64,000 nucleotides of DNA from Thalia democratica (GCA_965202585.1 OZ241829.1:19902001-19966000), one strand, 5' to 3'. Counted from the first letter of the stretch, positions 24,784 to 55,994 are shown. The notes: generated by a model not told the origin, from the sequence alone. Numbers and translations are program-made.

Positions 24784-26061
24784 ATTAAAAATATTTAAAG
24801 ATTTTTCTATTTAATTTTATCACTAATGCTTACTTTTAAAAACATTAACCTTTATAACACTTTAAATTAATCGAAGGTTAAGCTTTAACATCAAAAAAGT
24901 AGTAATAATTTCAAGTTATTCTAAAACTAATTAACACTTATTTACTAAAAACCGTATAAAATTAAACAAACTTAAGACTAATGTTTAATTGTGTATAGTT
25001 AAAACATATTTAGTCTTTTTATAGAAAAAACTTTATATGAAAAACAAACTACATTAAATATATTGTATTAAAACAATGACTAATTTTTCAAAAAACATAT
25101 TTCTGCAAAAAATATATTGGAATTTTTTAATTAAGTAACTAGTTGTGTTTAAATAAACTTAGAGCATGATAAAAAAAGCTTTACATACAAACTAAGTATT
25201 TTTAAATAGAAATAGAAATTAGGAAAAAAATACTACTTTTGTAAATATACTTCTTTACTTATTTATTAATAACATTGATTTAAAAAGTTAAAAAAAAGAA
25301 AAAAACAGATAAAAAGTGTGTATGGTTTTTTCTTTACTTTTAAAATATAGTTCTTTAACGTACGTTTTAAACCATTGGGTTATATGAAAAAATTAGATTT
25401 CAAAATACTTAAACAAATGCTTTATTTTTTTATTATCTTTACTCTGTTGTAGCTATTAAAAGTATAAACATCATAATGTCGCCACAATAACAAGTTATGT
25501 CGTATAATTGAAAACCCATTAGTTTGAATTATCACACGTGACAAGACGACTTAGCTGATCAGTAAATATTTCAAATAGAAATTTTTAAGCAACAAAACCT
25601 CAGATTTTCAGTAATACTTGAACTACGAATTGTTACAAACTTTTTTTTTATTACTTTATAAAAAAACATATAAGTGTGTTCTAACAAAGTTCAAATTGTA
25701 TTTATCAAATTAATTATGCAAATAGCTTTTGAAATATTTAGAGAGTTGATTAATTTTCATAACATTAAACATTTAATGTTACTAATAAAATAGTATTTAT
25801 ACTTTCCGGGACAAAACGTTTAACTGTGTCCGAGTAGTGGAAGACCGGATATAAAAAATATTTCTCGAATATTTTATTTTACTAAGACCAAATCTTTTTG
25901 AACGTTATGTTTTGCCGATCAATAAACTATCGCAAGTGTACATTTATCAATTAAGAAATTACAACATATGCTTAATAAACTAATTAAAAAGAGACTCCTT
26001 CAAAATAAGACAGTTTATTGAAGCATAACAAAACTAAACACATCAACTTATACTCACTATG

Positions 26062-26616
26062 TCAATTATCGTACACAATAACAAGACGTTTCAACAAAAC
26101 AAATAATACATACTGATGCAACCGAGGTTTACTTAATACACAATACAATACGATTCCGTTTTCAGCCTGACACTGAAACAGATTCAAATTTTCATCTAGC
26201 AAATTCCCATTGTTATCTTGTTTGGACAAGCCATTTACTTGTAACCTTGAATCATTAATAATACGCTGCTTGACCGCAGCAATCAAATCAAACCTGATAG
26301 AAGATAGTTTGCAAGCACATCTTCTTCCATCACGATCGGAAGGCAAAATGACGTAGAAATGCGCCCAAGTAGAAAATTCCCCTGTTGTGAGAATGAGTTC
26401 GGCCTTCGGGGTGCCCTGAACAAAACGGTGATTATCTTCGCACAAACTCAAACCAAAACCCTGTTGTAGCTTGTCAGGATAATAAAACAAACGTTGGTCT
26501 ATAACTGGTACGCCGACAGTATCACAAAACCTTTGTTTGATTTCACGCACAGTGATGGGCAAACTGATGACGTTACATGTAACTGTTTTAACTTCTAAAT
26601 GTATTACCAATTGCAT
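26062..26616 (-). CDS. Tandem di-ubiquitin-like protein, copy A, 184 aa, long form with hydrophobic tail
   Basis: Ubiquitin-like patterns occur twice: MQLVI..TVREIKQR..GVP..QRLFY..ELIL and FYVI..D.IAAVKQRI..GNLLDEN..L..ENG..LYCVL. There is no C-terminal GG; the protein ends HQYVLFVLLKRLVIVYDN. Confidence 0.75.
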   Translation of the reverse strand: MQLVIHLEVKTVTCNVISLPITVREIKQRFCDTVGVPVIDQRLFYYPDKLQQGFGLSLCEDNHRFVQGTPKAELILTTGEFSTWAHFYVILPSDRDGRRCACKLSSIRFDLIAAVKQRIINDSRLQVNGLSKQDNNGNLLDENLNLFQCQAENGIVLYCVLSKPRLHQYVLFVLLKRLVIVYDN

Positions 26617-29161
26617 CTTAACAAACCTTCAAAAATTATAAATGTTTACCGATACTGATTAAAAACTTGATTTACACTTAACTTTATTTACCCTATATGA
26701 CCTAGATGATAAATATTATAACTTTTTAACTGACATAACTATTAAGTTTATTTAAAATTAAAAGTGTTAACTCAAAAGATGTTATAAAAACTGCTAAAAT
26801 TTACAAAAACCGTCATTAATACATTACCTAGATTCCACATAATAATTTTGATACTTTTTAAATAAAAATAGTTTTAGGCCATTCAATACGTGATTAGTAC
26901 TAGTTTTAAGTTTTTTTTCTAAAAATTGTAGATCAAAGCTTCAATAAATAAATAAAAGTAAGGTTTAAGTAGTAGTTTAACTAAGTTAAGATAGTTTTTT
27001 TTTCTTTAAAGTAAAAACAAAATTATTATATATTTTAAAAATTATGCTCGAAAAAAAGGTAATAAATAGATCTTGTATTAAAATTATGTTAAATTTTAAT
27101 ATTAATGGAAATATTGTAAATTGTAAGAAATTTCAACAAGATATCTAAATAACTTAGCTGATACAATACAAAGTTAATTTGTGCCAGTTTATTAAAAATT
27201 AATAAACGAATGTGTCGTTTGACATATTTTAATCTTAAAACTGTCACTAATGCATAATTTGTTTATACAATAACTATTACCACATTTAAAGTATAAATTA
27301 TAAGCAAAACAAATTAACAAAAAAATATGTAACAAAATTCTTTTTTTTCAGGATATTTCTTTGACTTTGCTTCTCTAAAAATCCTGTTGATATTTCAAAA
27401 TTAAAAATTTTCGTTAGAATATATATATATAATTTATAGCAGTTTTGTTTATTTAAAGTCAACTATCGTTTACGTAAAACTTTCATAACTATTTTCTACA
27501 TGTTATAACATTTTATATAAAAATAATTAATCACATTATTGTTTATTAAACATCGATTTTGAATAAAAGAAAAAATAAAACAAAAACTTTTATTTTGAAA
27601 ATTTAGTTTTTTAGTTGTGAAATGTAAATTGGTTGATATATTATTACACAGTCTTCTGGCTAAAATATATTTTTGTTTAATTTGTTTGGTATAAAGTTTA
27701 TAGTTTCTTATTATTGGAACAGTTCTAACATGCACGAAGACATTTTTGCACGAAGGGTCAATTATGCACGAAAACAATTTAACACGAGCAATTTATGTTG
27801 CTATGATTCAACAAACTGTTTTGATTATCGAAAATCTTCATAAAATATAACAAAAACTCCATAATATCTAATATAAGTTTATAAACTACCCTTAAGTACA
27901 CCTGAGAAAATCATGTTTTTAACGAGAGCAAAAATCTCTTAAACTAAATATCATGAACAAAACTACTTACAAAAAATGAAATAGTACTTTAAATTATCTA
28001 AAACCGAACACTAAAACTGTGCTATTAAGTACATCCTACTTGCTTCACTAAGTAATTTAATTTTAACAATAATAACCTTTATCTTGAGTACAAATGAAGC
28101 TTGATTAAATTATTTAAAGTAAAGTTTAAGTACTAGGTTACTTGATTAAATTATTTAAATTAAAGTATAATTTTAAAAGATTAAACTAAACTATATATAT
28201 ATACTACTTAGTTGTTAAAGTAAAAAAAAAACTTCTTAACTATAAAACGCTCTAAATTATTATTAATATTATTTAAATTTAATTAGTTTTGAATAGTGAT
28301 TGTAATTCAAGCAACCATTTTTCTATCTTTAGCTATACTTATTATGAGTATAATAATATAGTTGAATATCAAAGTTATGAGTGCCTTAATAAACGAAAAA
28401 AAAAAAGAGTTTATACTCACAGTTATTTACAATATATTTTTTAAATGTAAAGTTCAAACATTTTAAAAGTTAGTATAATACTTATTACTTCAATATTAAA
28501 AAGTTCTTACAAAAATAACTAAAAATAAATTAACTTATTTCTTATTACTATGAAGCTTCAAAAAGTGTTGAATTTGAAAATAATATAAATCAAAAGGGTT
28601 TAAACGTTTTTAAAATTGGTTTAAAATTGATCGTTTATTGTTCTTACTAAAAGCGTTTTATTTAGTTTTTACTTAAGAAAAAAGCTATTATTGTTAAAAC
28701 TAAATTTTCTAGTGAAGCAACTAAGATTTTTTAATGATATAGTTTTAGCGTTCGGTTTAAGTTTATATGAAGTACTGTTTGATTTTTGGTATCACTGTGA
28801 AGTAGTTATGTTTATGATTTTTAAGTTTCTGAATATTTTTGCTCGTCTCTAAAACAGTTTTTTCAAAATTGAATCATTTATAATCAGTCAGGTTTAGTCG
28901 TATTACAGAAGTTTAGGGGCCATTAATAATAAAGAGGCCACATGGGGGTTATGATACCATAGTTTGAAACTTACACTAGATAGGTTTGACGGTGAACAGC
29001 AAAAAACAAAGGTCTCAGGTGTATACAAGGGTATTTTTTTATAGAAATCGTTCCGGAGATGGCAGTAGCTTATTTTATTTCTTTAAAAAAGTCCTTATGG
29101 AAATAAAGTTAGGTAGATTCTAATTTAAAACATTTAAATTTGTTTTCCAACTCTATTTTAC

Positions 29162-30227
29162 TAGTGATGTGCCGGACTTACTATCCGGATCCGGCTGGAT
29201 ATTTCCATTTTTGTCTGATTTCCGGATCCGGCCGTATTCCAATTTGATAAAAAAGTCCGGATCCGGTTTCGGCCGGATTCTAATTTGAAAAAAAGTCCAG
29301 ATCCGGTTCCGGCCGGATCTTAACATAGATCCGGCCGATTCGGATCTAGTTAGTAAAAAAGAGCATACAAAAAAGTATTTTTTTAAAAACAAATTCTTTG
29401 TAAATTAAAAAGAGTCATTTTCGTCTGTTAAAATTAAACACCTACCATGATTGGCTAGATTTGAACACATGACTAATTTACATTTGTTTACATTTAAACT
29501 ATGAAATAAAAATTTAAGAAATGCAACTCTTTACCTATGTTGTATAATTAAAAACTTTACTACCAAATTGTTAGGCTAGTTTTAAGATTTTTTGAAAAAC
29601 TCAGGCTAGTTTTCTTTTAGATTTTAAATGAGTTTAAGCTGATCCAGTTTTCAATATTTTGTGATTTTCTAGTTAATTTTGTTCAAGAACTTGATTTTAA
29701 TTGATTTTAAATTGGTAAGGCTATAGGGGGAGGGGGGGGTCCTCCTTGATTTTTACAAGTTGATCTTATCTTATAGATTTTAATCTTAGCTACCAGATAT
29801 TGTTCCTGTGATGTACTTTATCTCTCTATCAGTTTTCCTTATACTAAATTTAAAGTTATTCATAGTTTTTTTAGCTTTTATAGAAATGAAATTTTGAAAC
29901 TACAAATGTAAGCTCTACTTTTTATGTGAAAACTAGTAATGTGCCGGACTCACTATCCGGGTCCGGATCCGGCCGGATATTGCCATTTTTGTCTGATATC
30001 CGGATCCGGCCAGATCTTGATATGAAAAAAAAATCCGGATCTGGTTCCAGCCGGATTCTAATTTGAAAAAAAAGTCTGAATCCGGTTCCGGCCGGATCCT
30101 AATTTGAAAAAAAAAGTCCGGATCTGGTTCCGGCCGGATTCTAATTTGAAAAATAAAGTCCAGATCCGGTTCCGGCCGGATACAAATTTGAAAAAAAAAG
30201 TCCGGTTCCGGATCTGGTACATCAATA
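29162..30227. mobile_element. Non-autonomous hAT element (TAGTGATG ends, CCGGAT-rich subterminal repeats) with an internally duplicated end
   Basis: Starts TAGTGATGTGCCGGAC, restarts at 29934 and ends GGTACATCAATA. Near-TSD TATTTTAC/TTTTTTAC. Paralogous flank units (e.g. near 32690) lack the insertion. Confidence 0.8.
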
Positions 30228-31021
30228 TTTTTTACTAATGCTTACTTTTAGAAACATTAATCTTAATCATTATTTTAAGGGGTTGAAAGTCAAGCTTTAC
30301 TACTAAAATAAAAATATAAAAATTTAAGTTTATTTTAAAACTAATTATAATTTAATAAAATTAATACTAAAATGTAGGGACACGTTCAAAATCAACTCGC
30401 GATTAAAATCCACCCTCGTGTAAATTCTATCCAATCAAAATCCACCCAGTCTAAACTCGATAACCACTTACTGATCAAACAATACTTTATATCGAATTGT
30501 TTTAAACTTTGTATATTTTTTTAGGTTACTTTGAAAAAATCATTTAGTATTATTTGTATTAAATTAAATTAAAATAGTATAGCGTTTAGTAAATGGACTT
30601 TATATAGAATTTTCTTAATTTAAAGTCATTAGTTTTTCATGACGTTGGAAATGTAATATTTCCAAACAAAAGTATTTTTACTATCCTGGTAATGACGCTA
30701 AGATGTATCCAAGTTGTGTAAGCCTTGATATAAAGAATACTTATCAAAATATATATTATTCCCAGGATCAAATACTTTTGACCACTTTGTTTTGTCAATC
30801 AATTAACAATTGAAACTATTATTTAAAGTGTATTTTTATCACTTAACAAACTACAACACAATATATACTTTAATTAATTAAAAAAAGACTCCTCGTAAAA
30901 AAAATAGTTTATTACAACAACACAAATACGTCAACTTATACTCACTATGTCAGTTATTAAACACAATAACAAGACATTTCAACAAAACAAAAAATACATA
31001 CTGGTGCAACCGAAGTTCACT

Positions 31022-31513
31022 TTATACACAATGCAATATGGCTCCGTTTCCTACCTTACTTTGAAACAGATTCGTATTTTCAACCAGCAAATTCCCATTG
31101 CATTCTTGTTTAGACAAGTCATATACTTGTAACTTTAAATCATTTATGACACGCTGCTTGACCATAGCAATCGAATCAAACCTGTTAGAAGATATTTTGC
31201 AAACACATCTTCTTCCGTCAGGATCACGTGGAAAAATGACGTAGAAATGCGCCCAAAAAGAAAATTCCCCTGATGTGAGAACAAGCTCGACTTTCGGGGT
31301 ACCCTGAACAAAACTTTCATCATCTTTGCACAAACGCAGACCAGGACCCTGTTGTGGCTCATGTGGATTCTCAGGATAATATAACAAACGTTGGTGTCTG
31401 ACTGGCACATCAAAACATTTAAATAATCTCTGTTTGATTTCAAGAACAGTAATGGGCACACTGATTTTGTTAAATTTAAATTTTCTAGCTTGTAAATGTA
31501 TTACCACTTGCAT
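31022..31513 (-). CDS. Di-UBL protein, copy B, 163 aa (TAA after LHCV; latent open tail 30950-31021)
   Basis: Clear paralog of copy A across the whole ORF. Confidence 0.72.
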   Translation of the reverse strand: MQVVIHLQARKFKFNKISVPITVLEIKQRLFKCFDVPVRHQRLLYYPENPHEPQQGPGLRLCKDDESFVQGTPKVELVLTSGEFSFWAHFYVIFPRDPDGRRCVCKISSNRFDSIAMVKQRVINDLKLQVYDLSKQECNGNLLVENTNLFQSKVGNGAILHCV

Positions 31514-32840
31514 CTTAACAAACCTTCTAAAATATTAAACGTTTACTAATAATGATCAAAAAATAGCTTCGATTTAATAAAGATAAATTAACTCATAAGT
31601 TTTTTATGCCTTTTAGTTAAGAGCAAAGTATATAAGTAAAGAACACTTTTGTAATTTAAAAAAATCTGTTTACATTAAAAGTTCTAAAAAAATCTTTACT
31701 TTTTCAGTTAATCTAGAAATAAAACTGACACTTAGTTGATAAAGTAAAACGAAATCTCTTATATATAAAACGCTCCTAATTGTTTCAATGTTGTATAACT
31801 TTAACTAGTTTTGAATAGTGATTGTAATTGAAGTAATCAAACTTCTACCTTTGGCTATACTTATTATGACAATAATAAAATAGTTGTATATCATAGTTAG
31901 GAGTGCCTTAATAAACGAAAAAATAAACAGGTTATACTCACAGCTGTTTAAATTATATTTTTTTAATGTAAAGTTCCTCGAAAAACATTTTATTATTAGT
32001 ATAATACTTATTACTTAAATATTAAACAATATTTACAAAAGTAATAGAAAATTTTTGACTTATTTATTATTACTATAAAGCTACAAAAAGTTTTGAAATT
32101 TAAAAACAATATAAATTAAAAGGTTTTAAGCGTTTTTAAAATTGGTCTAAAAATTATTGTTTAATTTTTTACAAAAACCGTTTTATTTAGTTTTTATTTA
32201 AGAGAAAAGTTATTATCGTTAAAACTAAATTTTTCAGTGAAACAACTAACACAATTAGTGATATAGTTTCAGCGTTCGGTTTTAGTTTATATAACGTACT
32301 GTTTAATTTTTGTAAAAATGTCTATGAGTATGACTTCTAAATTTGTTTATGATTTTTAAGTTTCTGAATTTTTTTGCTTGTATCTAAAACAGGGTTTTCA
32401 AAAGTGCTTCTAAAAGGGTCAGTCAGGTATAGTCGCATTACAGAAATTTAGGGGCTGTGAATAGTAAAGGGGCCCACAGGCGGCTAAGAGACCACCATAG
32501 TATAAAACATACACTAAATATTCTGGATTTGACTGTGAACAGAAAAAATAAAACAAGGTCTCAGGTGTATTTAAAGGTATTTTTTCAAGAAGTCTTTCCG
32601 GAAGTGGCAATAGCTTATCTTATTTTAAAGTTCAATGAAAAACATTGGGCAAATTATAATTTAAATTATTTAAAGATAATGTCTAACTTTTTTTTTACTA
32701 ATGCTTACTTTTGAAAACACTTATCTTAATCTTTTTTTTTTAACTGGTTGAAGGTTAAGCCTTAACATTAAAATGAAAATATAACAACTTAAAGTTTTTC
32801 TATAACTAATTACAACTTTAATATAATTAATACCGAAACG

Positions 32841-33105
32841 TAGGGACACGTTCAAAATCAACCCGTGAATAAAATTCAATCGCGATCAAAATGTACCCAT
32901 CCTATTAAAACCCATCTAGTCAAATTCGAGAACCGCTTACTGATCAAGGTTAAGGATTAGGAGTAACAGTGATAGTGAAAAATATATTAAAATAAATAAA
33001 AAAAATGCAAGAAAATTATTAAATAAGTTTATAAATAAACAAAATGTAAAAAAATATCGGGTTGATTTTGAACGCGGGTAGATTTTGAACGCGGGTGGAT
33101 TTAAA
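32841..33105. mobile_element. Small element with 17-bp subterminal inverted repeats (MITE or Helentron/HINE-like); partial copy at about 30375-30475
   Basis: CGTTCAAAATCAACCCG (32849-32865) is the exact reverse complement of 33058-33074, with tandem variants next to it. Confidence 0.6.
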
Positions 33106-34318
33106 TAGTATACCGAAATGAAAATGCGTATAATTAAAAAGTATCAAGTGTTTGTTGAACAATTTTTTTAATAAAAAACAAATTACACTAAGTCTAATCA
33201 ATAGAAGCAATAATTAATTTTTCGAATATATATACATCTGTGTTAAAAAAATATGGGAATTTTTAGTTTAACAATTTATGCAGAGTAACTAACCGTATTC
33301 TTATTTTTTAATAGAAGTGAATATAAAAGCTAAACCATGGTGAAAAAACGTTATATACTAGATACGTTTTTAAAGGTATAAGTAAAAATAACAACAAATA
33401 TACTTTTTTATAAATACTTTACTAAATTTATAATTTAAAAGCATCATTTAAAAAGCTTAAATAAAAAAAAGTGTTTAAAGCAAAGAAAAATAAAACATAG
33501 TAGTTGAAAATAAATTTAAAGCCATATTGTTATACAAAAAAAAAATGTTTTTAAAATATGTTTGCTAATGACTTACTTTTTATTTTCTTTAAATTGTTGT
33601 AATTACTAAATGTACTAACATTCTAATGTCGCCACCAAAGAAAGTATTTTGTTTAAGTAAAGACCTTTTGGTTTTAATTATTATTAGTGACAAAACCATT
33701 TAACTGATTAAAGAATATTTCAAATTAAAACTTTTAACCAATGAAGCATAACGTCAATAATATTACTTAAACTTCGAATTGTTTCAATTTTTTTATATTT
33801 TTGCTAGAATAATTTGAAAAATTAAACATTTAGTATTATTTGTATTAAATTAAATTAAAATTATAGTATAGCTTTTAGTAAATGGACTTTATATAGAATT
33901 TTTTTATTTTTGAAAAGTTATATATCTTTCATGACGTTGGAAATGAAATGTTACCTACTGAAAAGTATTTTTACTGTCTGGTAAAGACGTTAAGATGTAT
34001 CTAAGTAGTGCAAGCTTGGATATAAAATTTTTTTACCAAACTATATATTGATCCTAGGATCAAATACTTTTATCCGATTTGCTTTGTCAATCAATTAATT
34101 ATTGAAACTATTATTAAAAGTATACTTTTTATCAATTAACAAATAATAATATATATTATACTTTAAATAATTAAAAAAAGACTCATCTAAAACAAACAGT
34201 TTATAAAAACATAACAACACAAACACATCAACTTATACTCACTATGTTACTTATTATACACATTAACAAGACATTTCAACGAAATAAATAACACATACTA
34301 GTGCAACCGAGGTTCACT

Positions 34319-34798
34319 TCATACACAATACAATACGATTCCGTTTTCAGCCTGACACTGAAACAGATTCAAATTTTCATCCAGCAAATTCTCATTGTTA
34401 TCTTGTTTAGAAAAGCCATTTACTTGCAACCCTGTATCGTCAATAATACGCTGCTTGACCGCAGCAATCGAATCAAACCTGTTAGAAGATGTCTTATGAA
34501 CAATTCTTCTCATAGGATCAAGCTGAGAAATGACGTAGAAATGTGCCCAATAAGAAAATTCCCCTGATGTTAGAACGAGTTCGACCTTCGGAATGTCATG
34601 AACAAAACTGTGACAATCTTTGCATAAACGCAGACCAGGACCCCGTTGTGGCTCATCAAAGTAATATAACAAACGTTGGTTAATGAATGGCACGCTTAAC
34701 CATTGAAAAATTATCTGTTTAATCTCAGGAACAGTAATTGGCACAATGATGTCGTTAAATGTAAATTTTCTAGATTCTAAATGTATTACCAGTTGCAT
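34319..34798 (-). CDS. Di-UBL protein, copy C, 159 aa (TGA after LYCV)
   Basis: Paralog of copy A; the downstream tail frame contains a TAG. Confidence 0.72.
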   Translation of the reverse strand: MQLVIHLESRKFTFNDIIVPITVPEIKQIIFQWLSVPFINQRLLYYFDEPQRGPGLRLCKDCHSFVHDIPKVELVLTSGEFSYWAHFYVISQLDPMRRIVHKTSSNRFDSIAAVKQRIIDDTGLQVNGFSKQDNNENLLDENLNLFQCQAENGIVLYCV

Positions 34799-39166: not shown

Positions 39167-39652
39167 TTATACAAAATACAATATGGTTCCGTTTTCAACT
39201 TGACATTGATACAGATTCGAGTCATCCTCCAGCAAATGCCCGTGGGGTTCTTGTTTAGACAAGGCGTGAGTTCTCAACTCGTCATGATCAGCAAAAATCC
39301 GATGCTTTATCTCATGAATTAAATTAAACCTGTTGAAAAAAACCTTGAGAACTCGTCTTTCATCGCCAGGATAACGTGGAAAACAGACGTAGAAATGCGC
39401 CCAATTTGAAACTTCCCCTAGTGTGAGAATAAGATCGACGTTCGGGTTGCCCTGAACAAAACTTTCATCATCTTGGCATAAACGCGGACCAGGACCTCGA
39501 TGTGGCTGGTCAGGATAAGAAAACAAACGTTGGTGTCTGACTGGAACTCCGAACTTAAGATAAAACATTTGTTTAATTCGAAGCACAGTAATGGGCCCAA
39601 TGATGTTGGTGAATGTAAACTCTTTTGTTTCAAATTTTATTACCACATTCAT
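39167..39652 (-). CDS. Di-UBL protein, copy E, 161 aa (TAA; latent open tail 39095-39166)
   Basis: Divergent paralog retaining the family motifs VPVRHQRL, LC.D..FVQ.P, WAHFYV and FQ/YQCQVENG. Confidence 0.72.
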   Translation of the reverse strand: MNVVIKFETKEFTFTNIIGPITVLRIKQMFYLKFGVPVRHQRLFSYPDQPHRGPGPRLCQDDESFVQGNPNVDLILTLGEVSNWAHFYVCFPRYPGDERRVLKVFFNRFNLIHEIKHRIFADHDELRTHALSKQEPHGHLLEDDSNLYQCQVENGTILYFV

Positions 39653-41340: not shown

Positions 41341-42379
41341 TATATATGTGCCTATTAGAACCGTTACTCATAATTAAACGCTATAATCTTTAAGCCAAAT
41401 AAGTTAAACAAAGATATATTTTAGCTGAAAGACTGTATGATAATACTTAAGCTAGTATTTCAATTAAAAGTGCTGTAAAGGTAAAATAAATTTATGTAGT
41501 AAATTTGGATCTTAATTAGCTTTTATGATAGTTTATCGTTAAAAATAAAAGAACTATGAATAAATATCTGTAATTTTAGGATGTTTTTAGACTTTGGTAC
41601 TTCTGAAAAGCCTGTTAATATTTAAAATTTATTTAGCATTTTTAAAATATATATTTAAATTATAGGAGTTTTGTTTATTTAAAGTCAATTATCTATTACG
41701 TAAAAATTTCTTAATAGTTGTCTACATGTTATATTAAAGTTATTAATCAATAAACATTTAGTTAAGTATTAATTTTTTTAAATATTGGAGAACAATAAAA
41801 CGTAAATAATTTTTCTAAATATACAAGTTTTATGTAATATATTTTCATATAGAGGTTTTTTTTTTCTTTTTTTTTTCATTTTTAGCTCGTTATAAACTTT
41901 ATTAATTTTGGTATGCAACTCGATGACCGAGAGGTCTTTTTGCGTATCTAGGTCGTTCAACCAAAAAAAATTAAGTAATTTTTTGTTTTTGTTTAATAAA
42001 CCACTAAAAGTTTTTAAATAGAACTAAACGTTTTTTTTTCAAAACATTTACATCAATAACGAATAGTTTATTAGCTTTTTGTCTAAAGTATCATGAACTT
42101 TTAAAAATAATATGTTTTTATTGTAGATCTATGTAAATAAAATAAATTATACAATCTTTTGATACAAACAGTTTGAAATAAAAATAATTTGAAAGATTTA
42201 GTTTTTTAAGAAAACAGTGTCAGAGTAACAACTAAGTTCAGTATAAAATAAATAAAAGGTTAATAAAAAAACAACTCGATTATATGTTGACAATAATAAT
42301 TTTTATATATTGGAATTATAGGTTAAATAAGACAGCGTTACACTTTTCAATATTATAAGCTATTAAATTAAAAATAAAG

Positions 42380-43083
42380 ACCTCGAAAATAAAAGAGTCT
42401 ATTGAAACATATAAAAAGAAAATAAACCAACCTATACTCACAATGTCAATTATCATACACGTTAACACGACACTTCAAGGAAACTAAAAATACATGTATA
42501 ATATGCACGAAGGTACATTTTTGCACGAAGACACTTTTGCATGAAAACACTTTTGCACGAAGGGTAAAGAAAATTAGTTTATACTCACACTTATTTAAAT
42601 TATTTTTTTTTAAAGTGAAGTTGAAACATTTTAATTGTTAGAATAGAACTTTTTACTTCAATATTTAAGGATTTTTATAAAAATAATAGAAAATTGTAAC
42701 TTATTTCTTATTACTATGAAGCTTCAAAATATGTTAGAAATTAGAAAAAAAAAAAAAGGGTTTAAGCGTTTAAAAAATCGGTCTAAAAGTAATTGCTTAT
42801 GTTTTTACTAAAAGCGTTTTATTAAGTTTGTACTTGAGAAAAAGTTATTACTGTTAAAACTAAATTATTTAGAAAAACAACCGAGATTTTTTAATGATAT
42901 AGTTTTAGCGTTCGGTTATAATTAATATAAAGTATTATTTAGTTTTTGGTATCACTATGAAGTAGTTTTGTTTATGATTTTTAATTTTCTTAAAATTTTT
43001 GCTTGTATTTCATCTACAGTGATGGGTAGATTGATGTTGTTCAATGTAAATTTATTAGTTTTTAAATGTATTACCACTTTCAT
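42380..43083 (-). pseudogene. Di-UBL copy F, centre deleted and replaced
   Basis: 5' stub 43015-43083 reads MKVVIHLKTNKFTLNNINLPITV. The 3' remnant at about 42380-42495 retains the tail end, TGA and GTGAGT. Between them lie a TTTTGCACG-repeat end and a copy of the array's flank block. Confidence 0.75.
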
Positions 43084-44385
43084 CTTAACAAACCTTCAAA
43101 AATATTTAACTTTAACTTAATTTATACTGATTAAATACTAGCTTATTTTACACTATACTTTCGTTTTTTAGTTTTTGTTTGCTTTATAAAATGAAATTTA
43201 TTATGAAAAATTTATATCAAATGTTTAGATATGACTAAATGTTGTTTCTAGCTTGATAAGTGTTACTCAAATGTCGCTTTACTGTACATACCTACATTTT
43301 TAGTTATTGTCAATATTACAATTACTACTTAATTAGGCTGCATGAATAGTAAAGGGTCCCAAAGGGGGCTATGAGACCATAGTTTTAAATTTACACTAGA
43401 TATTCTGAATTAGACGGTGAAGAGCATAAAATAAGGTCTTAGGTGTATTCAAAAGTAATTTTTCAAGAAGTCTTTTCGAAGCTTGCCATAGCTTATTTTA
43501 TTTATTTAAAATAGGCTTTATGAAAAAAAGTTATGGATAATCTAATTTAAAAACAAAAATTTAAAGATATTCTCTAACTATTTTCTTAGCTAATGCTTAC
43601 TTATGATAACATTAGTCTAAATATACTATATTTTTAAGGGTTGATAAGCTGAGCTTTAATATTAAGATAAAAGTATAAAAATTTAAAGTTATTCTAAAAA
43701 TAATTAGAACTTTAATACAATTAATACTAAAATGCAAATAAGTATAATCGAAAAACATTTAGTGAATGTTTAACAAATTTTTTAATGATAAACAAACTAT
43801 ACTAAGTTTATTGCATAGAAATAATCATTAATTTTTTGAATATATGTATTTCTAATAAAAGTATACGAGAAGTTTTTACTTATCAATTTATGATAATAAT
43901 TTAATGAATACTTATATTTGTTTTAATGTTTAACAGAAAATAAATTGGTATAATAATAATATTTAATTACTATTCTTAAAAATTACAAAAAATATACTTT
44001 CTCTTAATTATTTACCTAACTATGTTTGGTTTTTCTTTACTTTTAAAATATAGGAATTTAAAATAAGTAGTAAAAGCCTGGATATTAGAAATACTTTTCA
44101 AAATATATATATATTATTCCTAGGATTAAATCCTTTTGAGCGCTTTGTTTTGTCGATCAATTAACTATTAAAAAATTCTATTAAAAGTGTATTTTCACCA
44201 ATTAACAACTTACAACATATGTTATACTTTATATAATTAAAAAAAGACTTCTCGAAAACAAAACAGTTTATTGAAACACAAAAACAGAAATACGTCAACT
44301 TATACTCACTATGTCAGCTATTATACACATTAACAAGACATTTCAACAAAACAAAAAATGCATACTGGTGCAACCAAGGTTCACT

Positions 44386-44871
44386 TTATATACAATACAA
44401 TTTGGTTCCGTTTTCAACTTGACACTGAAACATGTTCAAATTTTCATCCAGCAAAATTCCATTGTGCTCTTGTTTAGACAAGCCATTTACTTGTGACCCT
44501 GAAACATTAATAATACACTGCTTGACATCAGCAATCAATTCAAACCTATTAGCACTTACCTTGGAAACACGTCTTCTTCCGTCAGAATCAGGAGGAAGAC
44601 AGACGTAGAAATGCGCCCAAATAGAAACTTCCCCTAGTGCGAGAACAAGCTCGGTTTTTGGGGTGCCCTGAACAAATCTGTCATAATCTTTGCACAATCG
44701 CAGACCAGTATCCTGTTGTGGCTCGTCAGGATAATAAAACAAACGTTGGTGTCTAACTAGAACGCCTAACTCATCATGAAACATTTGTTTGATTTTAAGC
44801 ACAGTGGTGGGTAAATCTATGTCGTTTATTGATATAAACGCTTTAGTTCCAAATTTTATTACCAATTGCAT
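44386..44871 (-). CDS. Di-UBL protein, copy G, 161 aa (TAA; latent open tail 44314-44385)
   Basis: Paralog of copy A across the whole ORF. Confidence 0.72.
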   Translation of the reverse strand: MQLVIKFGTKAFISINDIDLPTTVLKIKQMFHDELGVLVRHQRLFYYPDEPQQDTGLRLCKDYDRFVQGTPKTELVLALGEVSIWAHFYVCLPPDSDGRRRVSKVSANRFELIADVKQCIINVSGSQVNGLSKQEHNGILLDENLNMFQCQVENGTKLYCI

Positions 44872-45694
44872 CTTAACAAACCTTCAAAAATATTAAATAC
44901 TTACTGATACTGATTAAAAAAATCTTAATCTACTTTAGGTTTTAGTGACTCACTTCTAGTTTTTATTCTTAATTGACTAAATTTGAACAATTTGTAATTT
45001 TCAAAGCGTTTTGATTAAGCAACTTTTAAAATCAATTCTGAAACGTAATAGTTTTAATGTAATAGCACCCTATTGTCGATACAATATTTTATATCACAAT
45101 TGACACTGATTAAGGGATTCAAAAATGAGGAAAAGATTTATAAAGTTTTCTTCAATCAAATAGAAACACGAAATAGCTTTTGAAACACTTTTAATTAGAT
45201 GTTGTAAAGACTAATGAAATTAACAACAAAATATCCACAACCCCTTACTTAAATTCCACATAAGACTTTTGCAAATTTTTAGGTTAAACAACCTTTAGAA
45301 TTTCGAAAGATGCTAAACTATGAATTTAAGTTTTTTTTTAATTATTCTAAACTGAGAGAATAAGCTTGATAAATAAATCAAAGTAAACTTTAAGTACTAC
45401 CTTATATCAAACAATTTTTTTTTATTAATTGAACTAAACTGTAATACATTTTATTTTTAACACTGTGTACAAAAATGTTTAAACATAATTTATATCATAA
45501 TAGAAATATACATATTGTAAACTATAAAAAATTTAAACAAGATAGTTAAGTAATTTAGCTTATACAAAATTAGTTCTGCTAATTTATTAAAATATAATAA
45601 ACGAAAATGTCGTTTAAAATATTCAAATCTCAAAATTGATACTAATGATGTATCACTTGGTTTTAAAACTATTATCATAGTTAAGGGTAGGAGG

Positions 45695-46150
45695 CTAATA
45701 TGCACGTAAGGACACTTTTGCACGGGATGAAATTGTTTTTTTTTTTTTGTTTTTAACAGTTTAAATTTACTATATTTTATACCATCATTCACTACCATCC
45801 CTAACCCTTACCAGCGGTCTTATTTTTTTACTCGTTTTTTTATTGATTTTACTTATTTATTGAGTTTTGTTTTTTACTTTTACCCATAACTCTTATTCTC
45901 GATTGGTAACTTTTTTTTTCGATTTTTCAGTATATTTTACTTTTTTTTCAATTGTTTTTTATTTTTCAATTTTTCATTTTTCTTTTCTATAACTTTTATC
46001 CCTAACCTTTACCCTCGGTCGGTAACTTTTTTTTCGTTTTTTGTTTATTTATTTAAGTTTTGTTAATTTTTTATTCTCATGCAAAAATGACCTTCCGTGC
46101 AAAAGAGTCGTTTGTGCAAAAGTGACCCCTTGTGCTAAAGTGTTTTCGTA
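45695..46150. mobile_element. Second copy of the TTTTGCACG-repeat element
   Basis: Same ends and the same CCCTAACCCTTACC..GCGGTCTTATT core as 40802-41340, at the homologous position of the duplicated unit. Confidence 0.65.
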
Positions 46151-47537
46151 CTATTTAGATGGTTTCAAAACTTCAAAGCTAACGCCTTACTTATTTATTA
46201 TTTATTAAATAATATTATTACTGTTATTATTGTTCGAGTTCAACGTTCGATAGCCCATAGCCCATAATCAGTCGTGACCATAACAGTCACTCATATTTGC
46301 TAAATCAGTAAAAATAACATCTTATTTTGTTGTTGTTTTTAATTTTAAGTGTTTAAATTTTAAATTTTTCGCTAAAATTTTATTATTTTTGAGTAAGGTG
46401 GAATATGAATAAATAAAAACTTCATTTAAAAAATTTCCTGACTCATCAAAAATGCAAATAAGACTGACTTTTTAGTTTACATACCCAAGGTATGTACAAC
46501 ATAAAAACTTATATTCATAGAAAGTTTGGTTTTATTTCAAAATCAACATATAAATGTTCAAAATAATTGCCACTCTAAAACTTTATATAAACATAGTTGT
46601 CCTTCGTGTATTACAAAATTTAGTTTAAACTTTTGTTAGTTATTAGCAGCAAAAGCAACTAGAAGGAGTAAACTATCAAATTGAATATACTTTACTGAAC
46701 AAAACAAAAGTTTTTGAGAATTTTCACTTTGATAATCAAAATTTTATTAAAACTTAAGTTAAATTTTGTAGGAACACTGTTACAGTTTTGCAACCCAAGT
46801 TTTACTACCAAAGCATATACAACAAATTTTCCAAACAAAAGGAAATTTGTAGTCCTCAAGGGCCCTGGTAGGAACTACCTTTAATTGGGGGAGAGCGTTT
46901 AGCTTTAAAGACTTTTACTGAATTTACCTTACTAATTAGGTTTAACTTAGTAATTAATAAGTATGTAATAAACTTAGTATAAACAATTTCTATAGTAAAG
47001 TGAGTTTATTGAATATGTTATTTAAATGTAAATGAAAGTAGAAGTGACAAAGCAGCCAATTTATCAGTAGAATAGACCCGCAAATATAAACACAACAAAT
47101 AAAAACAAAATTCTACAAATTAAAATGTGTTAATAATGTTCTTAAAATTTTGAATGTCACAATCTTAAATACAAAATAGGTCTTACTAATAAAACTACTA
47201 ATAATACAGAGTCTTTATATATGTCGTGCTTCATGCACAACGATGGCTAAACTAAGCACAACATAATACGATAATGTAAATAAACATCAAGATCTTACAA
47301 AAAGAAAATAATAAAAAAGTTCTTATAATCAAATCGTGTGCCTCTCGCACGGTCTTATGGCTTAACTGTGCCATTTAATAAACGTTGTTAAAGTTTTATT
47401 GTGTGTTGATTTAATAAACAATCGTCTAATGCCCTCTGGCGGTCATTTAAAAATATTAAAATATTCATTTTTGTTACAAACTAAGAAGAGGCTCACAAAA
47501 AATAGTGATCAAACAGTAATTGAAAACAAGTTTTAAG

Positions 47538-48158
47538 TAGTGATGTACCGGACCTGGATCCAGACTTTTTTTTGAAATTAGGATCCGGCCAGACCCGGAT
47601 CCGGATAGTTTTTTCAAAATTAGAACCCGCCTGAAGGCCGTATCCGGAACCGGATATATAATATTCTAAGTTATTTGTAATGTAAATAGGAATAAAAACT
47701 ACTATATTCGATAATGCAATTTTATTTAACTAACAACTAACTAAGTATAGTTGTGAAATGTTTATCTTTTATATTTTATATCTAATTATATCATTTTGAA
47801 TTTTGAAAAAATATAGTTTAAAAAAAATTTAGACTAAAAAATATTAATGTGCTGCTAAAATAAATAAAAAATCAGAAAGTTTATAATATGTTATTAAGGT
47901 CTAGTTAATATTAACAGTTAAAAATAGTAGCTGGTATGTTTGCTAATTTAAACTTTTTAATTTGTTTATGAAAAAATTCTTTTTTGTATGCTCTTTTTTA
48001 CTTACTAGATCCGAATCGGCCGGATCTCTGTTAGGATCCGGCCGGAACTGGATCTGAATCTTTTTTTCATATCGAGATCGGACCGGATCCGGATATCAGA
48101 CAAAAATAGCAATATCCGGCCGGATCCGGACCCGGACAGTGAGTCCGGTACATCACTA
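47538..48158. mobile_element. 621-bp non-autonomous hAT element with a perfect 8-bp TSD
   Basis: GTTTTAAG|TAGTGATGTACCGGAC ... GTCCGGTACATCACTA|GTTTTAAG. The termini resemble Ac (TAGGGATG). Confidence 0.9.
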
Positions 48159-49781
48159 GTTTTAAGCCATATCGTTATATTTAAAAGATATGAGATTTTA
48201 AAATATGTTTGTAAATGAATTACTTTTTATTTTCTTTACTTTTTTGTAGTTATTAAAAAGTATTAACATACCATTGTCGCTACAATAATAGATTTTGTCG
48301 TAAAACTAAGGACCTATTAGCTTAAACTTTCACGAATTAAAAAATTAACTGATTAAAGCATACCTCAAATGAAAACTTTTTAAGCAAGGAAACCTGAGGT
48401 TACTAAGAATACTTGTAATACTATTTAGTTTAAACTTTTTATATTAACTTTAACTCTAAACTTTAACAACTTTGGAAAAATAAATTAGTCAAAAGAAATA
48501 AAAAAATAAAATAGTTTATAGCCCATGGAATTAAACTAGAGTTTGTAAAATGTCTAGAAAGCTAAAAAAATTTTCATAAAATTAAAAATAATATGTTACA
48601 TATTCAAAAACATTCCTACCAGGAGAGTCGTGTGGAGTGTTGGACTGCCGCAATTGCACCACCTTAAAATTTAGTAAGTAAATTAAGTACCTGCAACGTT
48701 TTAGTAATTTTTTAGAACTAAATTTCTTGTAAGACTCCAATTCAGACAACGACCATTTTACTCACTACACTACGGCAAACTTTCAGCTGACTGCGAATGA
48801 AATCAAAAAGCAAAAATTTTTTAAGAATTACCTTAAAGTCAATATGAGCGTGAACTTAGCTTAACAGCGTTTTTAGGTACTTTATAAAAATGTCTAGTTT
48901 TAAGACCCAATTATTTTCCTTATCTTAATAGCAAATTAAAAACTTCTTTTTTTATACTAGAGAACGGTCTTTTGTCTTTAATTGAAAAAAATCCATTGAA
49001 CTAGGGTTTGACTTTCTGAGTTGGGCCCCTTTAAAATTTTACCCGTTATGACTTTTTTTGATGCTTTGATATGCTTTTCCCAGTTAATTATTGCTTTTAG
49101 AATATATGACCCATACAAGCTTTACCTAAATTCTTAGAAAATCTATTTAAGAGATTTTTTTGAAGAGTTTAGGTAAAACTTGTATGGGACATATATTTTA
49201 AAACAAAAATTAACTGGGTATAACATATCACAACAACATTAAAAATAATTTTACAAATCTGTTAAAAATGAAAGTTGTTAGAAAAATATTTTATTTTGCA
49301 AAAAAAGCTGTAAATGAAGCCGAAGCAACTCCATTAGGGACAACTGGAGCGGAGGCAACTCGAGCAAGGATAACTCGAGTAGTAATTAACGGAAATTAAA
49401 GCACCTCTGATTTTTTTCTTCACCATCAAAGAAAATACCAGACGGTGCCACTGCTTCCTACTATCCTCAGAAAGACTTTAAGTTATCCAAGTAGAGTAAA
49501 TTGGTTCACACAAATATTTTCGAAATATTTAACGGGATCTTTTCCTAGAACCAAATCCTTTCAAGCGCTTTGTTTTGTCGGTCAATAATCTATTGCATCA
49601 ACTAATATAAATGAATTTTTATCACTTAATAAGTTAAAATGTATTTTATACTCTAGTTAATACAAAAAAAACTTCTAGAAGAGAAAACAGTTTATTGAAA
49701 CATATAAAAACACAAATACTTACAATGTCAGTTAATATACATATAACGAGACACTTCAACGAAACAGAAAATAAATACTGA

Positions 49782-50282
49782 TTACAACCGAGATTCACTT
49801 AATACACAATACAATATAGTTCCGTTTTCGACCTGACACTGAAACAGATTCAAATTTTCATCCAGCAAATTTCCATTGTTGTCTTGTTTAGACAAACCCT
49901 TTACTTGCAGCCCTTCATCAGCAACAATTCGCTGCTTGACCACAGCAATCGAATCCAACTTGTTAGAAAATGCCTTACGAAGATTTCTACTTCCATCAAG
50001 AAAACGAGGAAAAATGACGTAGAAATACGCCCAAGTAGAAACTCTACCGAGTGTGAGAACGAGTTCAGTATTTGGGATGTCCTGAACAAATCTCTCATAA
50101 TTTTTGCACGATCGCAGACCGGATACTTGCTGTGGCTTCTCAGGATAATAAAACAAACATTGGTTTATAACTGGTACGCCGACAGTATCACAAAACCTTT
50201 GTTTGATTTCACGCACAGTGATGGGCACTTTGATGTCCTTACATGTAACTGTTTTACCTTCTAAATGTATTACCACTTGCAT
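49782..50282 (-). CDS. Di-UBL protein, copy H, 166 aa (TTA at the switch codon, stop five codons later)
   Basis: Paralog whose N-terminal half is closest to copy A. Confidence 0.72.
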   Translation of the reverse strand: MQVVIHLEGKTVTCKDIKVPITVREIKQRFCDTVGVPVINQCLFYYPEKPQQVSGLRSCKNYERFVQDIPNTELVLTLGRVSTWAYFYVIFPRFLDGSRNLRKAFSNKLDSIAVVKQRIVADEGLQVKGLSKQDNNGNLLDENLNLFQCQVENGTILYCVLSESRL

Positions 50283-53200
50283 GTTAACAAACCTTCAATA
50301 GTATTAAATGTTTAGTCATAATGGTTAAAATCTACCCTGATTTACACTTAATTTTACAGTTTGAATTCTTTTTTGCGAGCTTAAAGGAAATTTATTGTAG
50401 ATGATTTTAGTGAAATGTTTAAACATGATTAAAAGTTGTTTTAAGTTTGAAAATGAAACCAGAACATCACTACAAAAAGCTTTTACTTATTGTCAGTACT
50501 GTAATTACTATTAATTTTTCCATATTACAGACTTGAGATGAAAAGGTGATTTGTTTCATTTGTAATCAACTTGATCTGCTTTGAAAAGTTTTGCTCCAAG
50601 TTTATTTTCACTAAGATAATTACTTTTAAGTGATAGTTTTTATTTAATGAACAATTTAAATAAATTGCTAGTTTGTTTTAATGAATTAGACTAACTTAAG
50701 ATTTTTATTCTTCTTGGACTAAATTTGAACAATTTGTAATTAAAAGCGTTTTGATTAAGTAACTTCTTTATTTCAAATATGAAATGCAATTATTTCAGTA
50801 ACAACATTCTATTGTTCCTACAATAATTTGATCACAAATAACACTCATTAAGGGATTTAAAAATGAAAAACAGTATTTAAACTTATAAATTTTTCTTAAT
50901 TCAATGACAAATATAAACTAGCTTTTGAATCGTTTTAAATTAGAGTTAAAAAACTGCTTAAATTTTCTGTAATTTTCAAAAACGTAAGAATATTATATAA
51001 AATAAATTAAAACAAAATATCCATAACACCTTACTTATATTTAAACAAATGCTTTTTTTAATTTTTAAGTTAAATAAATAGTTGGCCTTCTAGTACATGC
51101 TGCTATATGGTTCAAAATCTTCTTGTAAAAATTTTCAAAAACTTACTGAATAAAGTTAAAATAAACATCTTTAAGTATACACTATGTTAAATTTAGTTAA
51201 AGTTATTTTTTATAGAAATTAATAAAAAAATATTACATTTTTGAAATTGTGCACAAAAAAATGTTTTAAATAAATTTTATAAGTTAAGTTTAAATAAAAA
51301 TGGAAATGTTCTAAAGTATGAGAAACTTTAACAAGATAACAAAGAAGGTTAACTCATTCAATTAAAAGTTATTAAAAATTAATAAACGAAAGTGACGTTT
51401 GACATATTTTAATCTTGAAATCGTTAGTAATTCATAATTTGTTTGTACAAAAGTTATTACAACATTTCAAACCATTAGTATAAAGAAAAAAAAGAAAGTA
51501 TTTATTAGCTTTAACACTGTGTAATAATATCTATGTTAATATTATAAATATAAAGTAATGATTAATTGTTTGTTTTAGTTTGTTTTCATAAGATTTTAAC
51601 GCTAAATATAAAAAATAAATGTAGTAAAGATTTGTACTTCTATGTTTCTTTTTACTTTGCTATTTCTAAATAGGCTGTTGGTTTTCTTTAACTTAATTAT
51701 TTTTTCAAGAATTTTTAGTTAGTATATAGAAGTTTTGTTTGTTTAAAGCCAACTATCATTCATGTAAAAAAATTATAACAGTCGTCTACGTGTTAAAACA
51801 TTATTTATCAAAGTTATTTAGAGTTTCAGAGTTGATTACAAAATTTAAAACTAAAATAATCATTTTTGTCTGTGCAATATTTTATCGTTCATTCTTTACA
51901 GTGCAATAAATATTTTCTTATATCATTTTCTAACTTTTTAATGTATAAAGGAATTTACATTTAACAAATAAAGATGTGAATATGAAAAACAAAAATATTC
52001 ATATTTTATTGTTTCCTTTTATTTAATGAAAATCAGTATTTAGCTAAGTTTTGATGTCATTAATAACTTTAAATAAAATGTTCTTATATGTAGATAAATA
52101 TTATTAAATATATGTAAACGATAGTTATTGTAAATAAACAAAAGTGCTATAAATTAACTAAATATTCTAAAAAATCTAACTAAATTAAAAAAAAATCAAC
52201 AGCTTTTTTAGAACAAGCAAAGTCAAAAAAAAATACTGAAAGTACAGATTTTAATTTTATAGTTTATTTATGTTTGAGCTTTAACATATCATAAAAACAA
52301 AGTCTGATTTAAACTACCTACATAATAATATTAATGTATAATGATATATACAATAATGTTGTTTTAACTTTACATTACTATATATTTAGAATACTAGCTT
52401 AAATATTATTATAGTGTTCCAGATAAAATGTATATTTTTGGTTAATTTGTTTTGGTTTAGATTTTACAATTTTTAATTATGATAATAGTTAATGTATAAA
52501 CAAATTATGCATTAGTGACAATTTTAAGATTAAAACATGTCAAACGACATTTTCGTTTATTAGTTTTATATAAATCAACACAAATTAATTATAGTTTGTA
52601 TGAGCTAAATTACATAATTGTCTCATTCATATTTCTATTAGCTTACAACATTTACATTTTAATTTGATATAAATTATATTTATAACATTTTTTAGGGCAT
52701 AATTTTAAAAATATTTTACAGTCACATTAAAATATATATTTTAATTTAAAATACCGTACTACTTAAATTGAAGCTTTATTCTCTCAGCTAAAAAAATAAA
52801 ACTTAAATCCATAGTTTCGCACATATTAAAAGGCCTAATGTTTTTCTAATTTAAAATTTACAGAAGTGTTATGTGGATTATAAGTATGGTGGTTTTGATA
52901 TTTTGTTGTAAATTTTAGCAGTTTTTCAATTATCTAATCAAAAGTGTTTAAAAACTTAGTTTATATTTCTATTTTTATAAAAATTTCGTCATTTAAAAAG
53001 CTTCTAATTATTATTACTTGTGATCAAACTTCTTGTAGTGACAATAAGATATTTTTACATTTAAAAGTATAGTTTCAGACTCGATATCAAAAAGATTCTT
53101 AACCAAAACGATTTAAAAAATTACATGTTATTCAAGTTCTGTTAAATAAGTGTGAAAACTAAAAGTTTAGAGTAACTTTGTTAAACAAACTAGCAATTAA

Positions 53201-53591
53201 TTTAGCTAATTCATTCAATAAAAACTATTATTAGTTAAAAAGAATTATTTTAGTGAAATTAATATAAACTTAAACAAAACTTTTAAAAGCGGATAAAAAT
53301 GATGACATATGAAGTTAATCACCCTTCCATCTCAAATTTGTTTAAAAACAATTAAGTAGTAATTACAATATTGACAATATAAAAAATGTAGGTACGTAGA
53401 GTAAAGTGACACTCGAGTTAGCACTTTTTAAGTTGAAATATACTTAATAGTTATGTGAACTTACTGAGTATATCTAATTATATTTATAAAAAATAACCTT
53501 TTTAAAACTCAAAACACTAAAATAAAGTGTAAATCTAGCTAGTTTTTGACCATTATTAGTAAACGTTCAATATTTTTGAAGGTTTGTTTAG

Positions 53592-54056
53592 ATGCAAGTG
53601 GTAATACATTTAGAATCTAGAAAATTTATATTTAAAGACATCAGTGTGTCCATTACTGTTCTTCAAATCAAACAGAGATTATTTCAATGTTTTGATGTGC
53701 CAGTCAGACACCAACGTTTGTTGTATTACTATCCTGAGAAGCCACAACGGGGTCCTGGTCTGCGTTTGTGCAAAGATGATGAAAGTTTTGTCCAGGGCAC
53801 CCCGAAAGTCGAGCTCGTTCTCACATCAGGGAAATTTTCTTATTGGGCGCATTTCTACGTCATTTTTCCACGTGATCTTGACGGAAGAAGATGTGTTTGC
53901 AAAATATCTTCTAACAGATTTGATTCGATTGCTGATAACAAGCAGCGTATTATTGACGATACAGGGTTACAAGTATACGGCTTTTCTAAACAAGGACACA
54001 ATGGAAATTTGCTGGATGAAAATTTGAATCTGTTTCAGTGTCAAGTTGAAAATTGA
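53592..54056 (+). CDS. Di-UBL copy I, inverted, 154 aa, truncated by GGA>TGA (possible young pseudogene)
   Basis: The premature TGA at 54054-54056 removes the final TILYCV segment. The homologous TGA at 54075-54077 and GTGAGT at 54153 are still present. Confidence 0.65.
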   Translation: MQVVIHLESRKFIFKDISVSITVLQIKQRLFQCFDVPVRHQRLLYYYPEKPQRGPGLRLCKDDESFVQGTPKVELVLTSGKFSYWAHFYVIFPRDLDGRRCVCKISSNRFDSIADNKQRIIDDTGLQVYGFSKQGHNGNLLDENLNLFQCQVEN

Positions 54057-54214
54057 ACCATATTGTATTGTGTATGAAGTGAACTTCGGTTGTATCGGCA
54101 TGTATTTTTAGTTTTGTTGAAATGTCTTGTTATGTGTACAATAACTGACATTGTGAGTATAAGTTGACATAGTTTTGTTTTTATGTTTCAATAAAATGTT
54201 TTGTTTTCGAGGAG

Positions 54215-55950: not shown

Positions 55951-55994
55951 TATTAATAATAAACAAACGAGATTAATTTTAACTGCTTTTATAC

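Follow-up and report, generated by a model that had tools for sequence, protein, structure and literature searches.

A tandem array of tail-less double ubiquitin-like genes in Thalia democratica, possibly under diversifying selection

A 64,000-nucleotide stretch of the Thalia democratica genome (GCA_965202585.1, OZ241829.1:19902001-19966000; hereafter the window, with positions counted from its first letter) carries nine homologous intronless loci whose intact members encode stand-alone proteins of ~160 residues, built from two ubiquitin-like (UBL) domains only and lacking a C-terminal diglycine. We consider it probable that these loci represent a lineage-restricted family of double UBLs (di-UBLs), derived from ubiquitin and unable to be conjugated, that acts non-covalently as decoy, inhibitor or adaptor and has been expanded into a diversifying array. 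The family is protein-coding and restricted to this lineage. Its architecture is already known, and what is new is the family itself and the form it takes (stand-alone, tail-less, arrayed and diversifying), not the kind of system. Literature searches of the library at hand turned up no account of a comparable family, and the Salpa thompsoni genome paper makes no mention of ubiquitin.

Nine copies of a two-domain gene

A preliminary description of the window had proposed nine such loci, seven on the minus and two on the plus strand. Open reading frame (ORF) listing together with tblastn within the window recovered all of them at the positions given below, spread over ~28 kb (26-54 kb of the window), which contains no runs of N. 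Six are intact (159-184 codons, all on the minus strand), one is truncated early, one frameshifted and one disrupted:

26062-26616, minus strand: copy A, intact di-UBL ORF of 184 amino acids (aa); the core ends at 26137 and is followed by a 24-aa tail
31022-31513, minus strand: copy B, intact ORF of 163 aa, including three residues (NPH) inserted in frame
34319-34798, minus strand: copy C, intact ORF of 159 aa, one residue being deleted in frame
36806 to ~37283, plus strand: copy D, pseudogene spread over three frames, with frameshifts near codon 8 and after LTSGKF
39167-39652, minus strand: copy E, intact ORF of 161 aa, the most divergent of the window copies
42380-43083, minus strand: copy F, disrupted; codons 1-36 at 42976-43083, then a repeat at 42566-43008
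near 42380-42500, minus strand: relic of the copy F 3' flank, beyond the ~450-bp interspersed repeat that replaces the interior of copy F
44386-44871, minus strand: copy G, intact ORF of 161 aa, used for the structure model
49782-50282, minus strand: copy H, intact ORF of 166 aa with a 6-aa tail
53592-54056, plus strand: copy I, 154 open codons; premature TGA at 54054-54056, family stop at 54075-54077

The premature TGA of copy I lies seven codons ahead of the family stop and removes the last beta strand. In copies A and H the family stop TAA has become TTA (Leu), which gives rise to their tails of 24 and 6 residues. Protein identity between copies is 49-69%, and the copy alignment contains the four core motifs listed in the preliminary description (VP..Q.L.YY, LC.D..FVQ..P, WA.FYV and QCQ.ENG). 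Because the copies are the sole long ORFs in a region of ~25% GC in which stop codons are frequent, we do not regard them as chance reading frames.

Several lines of evidence identify both halves of the protein as ubiquitin-like. Pfam returned weak ubiquitin matches in each half, with copies B, G, H and I scoring 27.1-34.7 bits (copy H being the highest, at 34.7) against the PF00240 gathering score of 25.4, and the remaining three of the seven (A, C and E) falling below it; 28 of 33 family members matched PF00240 at E <= 0.01. The family profile matched linear di-ubiquitin at E 5e-10 over two stretches, ISG15 at 1e-6 and FAT10 at 2e-4, and in the profile alignment domain 1 spans ubiquitin residues 1-74, with LVLTLG opposite LVLRLR. 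A profile was required for these comparisons, as a PDB search with a single sequence returned only a chance match to APOBEC3H (E 0.86).

For copy G, AlphaFold (AF2) with a 33-sequence alignment that included distant subfamilies predicted two beta-grasp domains, with a predicted local distance difference test score (pLDDT) of 90.4 and a predicted template-modelling (TM) score of 0.84; this run replaced a model from 12 close sequences that, at pLDDT 60, we took as a hint only. The model contains the beta-beta-alpha-beta-beta-(3-10)-beta grasp fold twice, and each predicted domain superposes on ubiquitin, ISG15 or FAT10 domains at 1.4-1.9 Å (Z ~10.5). When the full-length model was searched with Foldseek, the top matches were ISG15, linear di-ubiquitin, the chicken OASL tandem UBL and FAT10 (1e-10 to 1e-7). 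Together, these predictions make us certain of two beta-grasp folds per protein, and the tandem domains first proposed from the sequence are thus borne out by Pfam, profile, model, Foldseek and superposition alike.

The arrangement of the two domains is another matter. Whole-protein TM-scores were ~0.4 against both the PDB and AlphaFold DB, and the best two-domain shape match, the OASL di-UBL, reached a TM-score of 0.54 over 139 residues. The predicted packing therefore appears particular to the family and unlike that of any solved di-UBL (TM ~0.4). In the model it is compact and fixed, and two conserved segments would keep it so: the junction, LTLG-x-VS-x-WA[HY]FYV, and a loop, YPE-x-P-xx-GPGLRL. 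Both domains retain an equivalent of ubiquitin Lys27. Domain 1 also retains hydrophobic residues at the equivalents of Leu8, Ile44 and Val70, aligned by hand from the profile-to-ubiquitin alignment, and domain 2 has a conserved Ser-Lys-Gln at the Ile44 position, a mapping read from family alignments that is approximate.

The C-terminus and comparison with known two-domain proteins

The intact copies end on the last strand (LYCV, LHCV, LYFV or LYCI). As the preliminary description had stated, no C-terminal GG is present; alignments of all window copies and of every relative found contain none, the tails of copies A and H and the short tails of distant subfamilies included. The flexible LRLRGG tail that is the substrate of E1 adenylation is absent from the family, which thus has neither the flexible tail ending in Gly-Gly nor the precursor processed to it that defines a Type I modifier. 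At the junction between the domains, the window copies carry a single Gly (L-T/A-L/S/T-G-E/K/R), and close metagenome relatives carry LTLGG, which may be a relic of a ubiquitin-ubiquitin junction and is the sole hint of a processable ancestor.

This LTLGG motif raises the question of whether the proteins could be conjugated after all, through a GG exposed by processing at the junction or added by splicing to an unseen exon, and a donor-like GTGAGT ~75 nt past the stop is conserved in most window copies. We consider conjugation very improbable. The window copies have one Gly only at the junction, the donor-like site is lost in one relative (L001, TTGAGT) and is followed within ~40 nt by a conserved AATAAA, and a GG terminus occurs in no member of any subfamily. 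Nor is the frame beyond the stop conserved as coding (copy C meets a second stop, copy H stops after 6 codons and copy I is frameshifted), and we rejected the read-through tail as functional coding sequence on the same grounds. With no tail available to E1, we infer that the proteins act non-covalently.

The preliminary description had likened the family to ISG15 and FAT10. The two tandem UBLs of that architecture are present; sequence comparison places the family closer to ubiquitin, and its predicted packing differs from that of solved di-UBLs. The strongest match to the family profile is ubiquitin in its linear (Met1-linked) di-ubiquitin form. Domain 1 keeps the MQ-x-x-I/V start, both domains share the ubiquitin fold and the Lys27-equivalent, and close relatives of the window copies keep a GG near the junction. 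Identity to ubiquitin is only ~17-20%, however, and the family has an additional conserved loop in domain 1 (YPE..GPGLRL), opens domain 2 with a longer hairpin and has no C-terminal RLRGG, while the window copies lack a cleavable GG junction. The predicted fixed packing matches no solved di-ubiquitin (TM ~0.4). Polyubiquitins consist of near-identical head-to-tail units with a cleavable RGG, whereas the two halves of the family protein are very unlike each other and ubiquitin, and the junction of the window copies reads LT[LST]G[EKR]. The window itself contains no polyubiquitin gene.

ISG15 shares with the family a stand-alone two-UBL build of ~155-165 aa and was the top match in both Foldseek and VIA, and family domain 2 superposes on its C-terminal domain at 1.6-1.7 Å. 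It differs in its LRLRGG end, through which it is conjugated by way of UBA7 and which the family lacks; in domain orientation, with a root-mean-square deviation of 12-15 Å across both domains; and in the strength of its profile match, which is weaker than that of ubiquitin (1e-6 vs 5e-10), so that ISG15 is not the closest kin of the family. ISG15 is known only from vertebrates according to a review (PMC9722776). FAT10 (UBD) likewise consists of two tandem UBLs, and family domain 1 superposes on its N-domain at 1.9 Å, but FAT10 has a free C-terminal GG, is activated by UBA6 and matches weakly in sequence (2e-4).

The C-terminal tandem UBL of OASL resembles the family in having two UBLs without a conjugatable diglycine, and it is the closest match in the shape of the two domains together (TM 0.54, 139 residues), appearing among the Foldseek matches as PDB 7sbi. 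This tandem UBL mimics polyubiquitin through non-covalent binding, and by analogy the GG-less tandem UBL of OASL may be the closest functional counterpart of the family. In OASL, however, the di-UBL is one part of a fusion with an OAS-like domain, encoded by a single gene, whereas in the window it makes up the entire protein (ORFs of 159-184 aa without an OAS or nucleotidyltransferase domain) and belongs to a diversifying array; no specific sequence kinship between the two is detectable.

Gene structure, selection and gene conversion

Homology between the copies reaches up to 1-2.3 kb past the ORFs at 67-86% identity, indicating that the array arose by segmental tandem duplication and not by retroposition. 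Two conserved elements flank the coding sequence. An acceptor-like motif, TTTTTGAAG/GTTTGTTAAG, lies immediately 5' of the ATG in eight of the nine copies and is kept in metagenome relatives as well. A conserved 3' block (~120-150 nt after the stop) is present in every copy and contains AATAAA or a one-base variant of it, placing a poly(A)-like signal 106-121 nt past the last sense codon. Copy G provides an example of each:

44872-44890, minus strand: conserved, acceptor-like upstream motif TTTTTGAAG/GTTTGTTAAG
44240-44385, minus strand: conserved 3' untranslated block, with AATAAA at 44267-44272

Met1 is conserved in all subfamilies, and the ATG is therefore most likely the true start. The sequence suggests a gene with one coding exon, whose transcript may receive a spliced leader at the upstream motif; tunicates are known to use this form of trans-splicing (PMC5174732). 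Even distant subfamilies have the poly(A)-site portion of the 3' block in common. In this portion, the block TGTTTCAATAAACTGTTTT (window 30880-31021 and equivalents; L003:3261-3420, L006:1134-1290) is shared by copies that are only ~35% identical in protein, and it could reflect a 3'-end consensus general to these genomes instead of a family-specific element. We rejected conserved RNA folding as a feature of the 3' block, as RNAalifold gave -0.55 kcal/mol with essentially no covariation; the block is conserved at the level of sequence.

The copies could in principle be decaying, non-functional duplicates or the cargo of a transposon or virus, as would fit their intronless state, their poly(A) signals and the interspersed repeats and damaged copies inside the array. 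We find this hardly credible. Under a neutral substitution model, the probability that six intact ORFs remain open, on the terminal branches alone, is ~2e-9, such that neutral decay would have closed them; moreover, wherever intact copies differ in length (five cases), they do so by a multiple of three. Homology extending 1-2 kb into the flanks bespeaks segmental tandem duplication, and the base composition of the copies is that of the host DNA. The preliminary description had named membership of a known transposon or viral insertion as an observation that would count against it. Transposon cargo was rejected, since no transposase, reverse transcriptase or other mobile-element ORF lies at 10.5-64 kb, the stretches between the copies included, and viral origin was rejected as well, with no viral ORF in the same interval and no relative confirmed among 2.9 million viral contigs (IMG/VR).

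The mean Nei-Gojobori ratio of nonsynonymous to synonymous change (dN/dS, omega) between copies is 0.69, and maximum-likelihood omega is 0.87 with 9 sequences and 0.77 with 13; omega = 1 was rejected (likelihood-ratio test statistic, LRT, 8.0). Site models M1a and M2a were fitted with our own implementation, in which relative branch lengths are fixed. M2a was favored over M1a (2dlnL = 26), placing 45% of sites at omega 0.26, 37% at neutrality and 18% at omega 2.3. This class of sites above 1 agrees with the variable positions around a conserved core that had been noted from the sequence. Candidate fast sites, in copy G numbering, are 19, 50, 73, 101, 103, 106, 115, 124 and 136, which fall mostly in domain 2, at the start of the second strand, both helix ends and one loop.

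The paralogs also exchange sequence. Identity between copies A and H falls from 93% in the first 150 nt to 74% in the 150 nt that follow, and a test of the pairwise homoplasy index (PHI) type gave p <= 0.001 among paralogs; these mosaic identities point to gene conversion, which weakens the selection test. As recombination inflates site-model tests, we refitted three segments, each with its own tree. Domain 2 retained its signal (LRT 14.9), and so did the segments summed (p = 0.0013); the signal was absent from the middle segment, and the M2a test was not significant in two of the three alignment segments. The birth-and-death mode proposed in the preliminary description is supported by the coexistence of intact, truncated, frameshifted and disrupted copies, though gene conversion acts alongside it. 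One further mosaic was observed outside the window: metagenome contig L007, which encodes P0006, is 97% identical to copy I over its first 150 nt and 95% identical to copy G over the next 150 nt, and represents either an allele produced by gene conversion, carried by a wild animal of this species or a sister one, or a chimeric assembly (coverage 1).

Collectively, these data demonstrate purifying selection on the fold and the junction and selection that keeps the ORFs open; diversifying selection is likely but not proven. Several observations weigh against a family of diversifying proteins. The mean omega of 0.77-0.87 is near neutral, the three codon positions are conserved almost equally (0.79/0.79/0.75) and three of the nine copies are already damaged, while recombination between paralogs, as well as the fixed relative branch lengths of our M1a/M2a code, can inflate the site-model tests. 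Mean identity is higher in the 3' block (0.83) than in the coding sequence (0.78) and the outer flanks (0.55-0.69), so that part of the constraint may act on RNA and not on protein. The expression of the copies and their real 5' and 3' ends are inferred from conserved motifs only, and the acceptor-like motif 5' of the ATG may leave room for an unseen upstream exon.

The first of these points would also be expected if the tandem family were young and its constraint for the most part relaxed, as with germline- or testis-biased expression, a setting in which weak purifying selection and gene conversion operate without an arms race and the genes have a dispensable or dosage role. Such a family would account for the overall omega, the similar conservation of the codon positions, the disabled copies and the two segments in which M2a is not significant, and recombination could produce a false omega > 1 class. 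However, the ORFs are retained far above neutral expectation, omega is ~0.26 at 45% of sites, the domain 2 signal outlasts segment-specific trees and ~10 subfamilies with the same motifs imply long persistence. On balance, we regard relaxed constraint as unlikely, though it is the alternative to which we give the most weight.

We return to a ubiquitin-derived, non-covalently acting di-UBL family as the reading we favor. The gene would have originated from ubiquitin, two units joined head to tail being the probable source. The array grew by tandem duplication after the lineage split from its nearest relatives. Paralogs swap segments by gene conversion, with some copies dying and selection holding the others open, and a minority of positions, mainly in domain 2, appear to change their amino acids faster than silent sites change. 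The protein itself may be a look-alike of ubiquitin or di-ubiquitin, serving as a decoy, inhibitor or adaptor by occupying proteins that bind or process ubiquitin, and different paralogs may recognise different or changing partners. Such paralog diversity would be expected under host-pathogen or other genetic conflict.

Distribution, neighboring features and significance

A word-indexed search found five close relatives. When 1.84 billion representatives were searched exhaustively with HMMER, ~25 relatives with two domains (144-268 aa) emerged, the other matches being polyubiquitins. All 20 family clusters examined occur only in ENA marine metagenome assemblies, several of them from Tara Oceans, and none of the 20 has an NCBI or UniRef record or name; the lineage restriction suggested in the preliminary description accords with this distribution. 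The longer relative contigs are 25-28% GC, like the window. In JGI metagenomes no relative was confirmed and no further array was found, and language-model neighbors of the family include 'Ubiquitin D family' clusters. In the family tree the window copies group with one metagenome sequence (99/91); the sister of this clade comprises four metagenome sequences, and both clades lie inside one of ~10 subfamilies. This position indicates that the array either expanded locally and recently or is undergoing homogenisation.

The surroundings of the array contain several additional features. A ~450-bp interspersed repeat is present in at least five copies in the array (24252-24439, 28398-28846, 31929-32383 and 42566-43008, and inverted at 27941-28094); no coding capacity was seen in it, and it is probably a non-autonomous mobile element. 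The whole array is bracketed by two direct copies of another unit, at 21165-22461 and 54645-55929, which are 82% identical. The first contains a 124-aa ORF with an acidic tract (22106-22480, minus strand), and the corresponding ORF of the second (55529-55966) is frameshifted; the unit has no Pfam match and no convincing relative in Atlas, and pieces of its upstream flank reappear at 46272-46634. Within very AT-rich DNA, a GC-rich tandem repeat of 40-42 nt with CCGG palindromes (TCCGGTTCCGGCCGGAT...) occupies 29221-29318 and 29991-30211, and related sequence lies near 47400-48230. Outside the array, an intronless M3 peptidase gene (8157-10274, minus strand; 705 aa) resembles mitochondrial intermediate peptidase (PF01432 at 1e-114), and its best named relatives are from the tunicates Clavelina and Ciona (46-48% identity). 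It is 49% GC in a genome of 25% GC, and its lack of introns together with this odd composition suggests a retrogene or an unusual history. No Rfam families or tRNAs were found in the window.

Two-domain UBLs such as ISG15 and FAT10 are central to vertebrate antiviral defence. In the closest invertebrate relatives of vertebrates, we describe an unannotated, expanding family that has the same two-domain build, lacks the conjugation tail and evolves fast. One far-reaching possibility, which we hold to be speculative and rather doubtful, is that the array is a diversified binding repertoire on a rigid di-ubiquitin scaffold, nature's version of the ubiquitin variants and di-ubiquitin 'Affilin' binders made by protein engineering. 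Its paralogs, generated by duplication, segment shuffling and positive selection on surface positions of domain 2, would trap different ubiquitin-handling proteins of pathogens or selfish elements (e.g., viral deubiquitinases), and would thereby form an innate-immune decoy system in an ISG15-less sister group of vertebrates. If the genes are not expressed, they would amount to a lineage-specific gene family of modest interest only. If they are expressed and their products bind ubiquitin-handling partners, the family would exemplify natural ubiquitin mimicry as a diversifying recognition or decoy module, and would offer a tractable scaffold (160 aa, with no disulfides required) on which to study the re-targeting of the ubiquitin surface.

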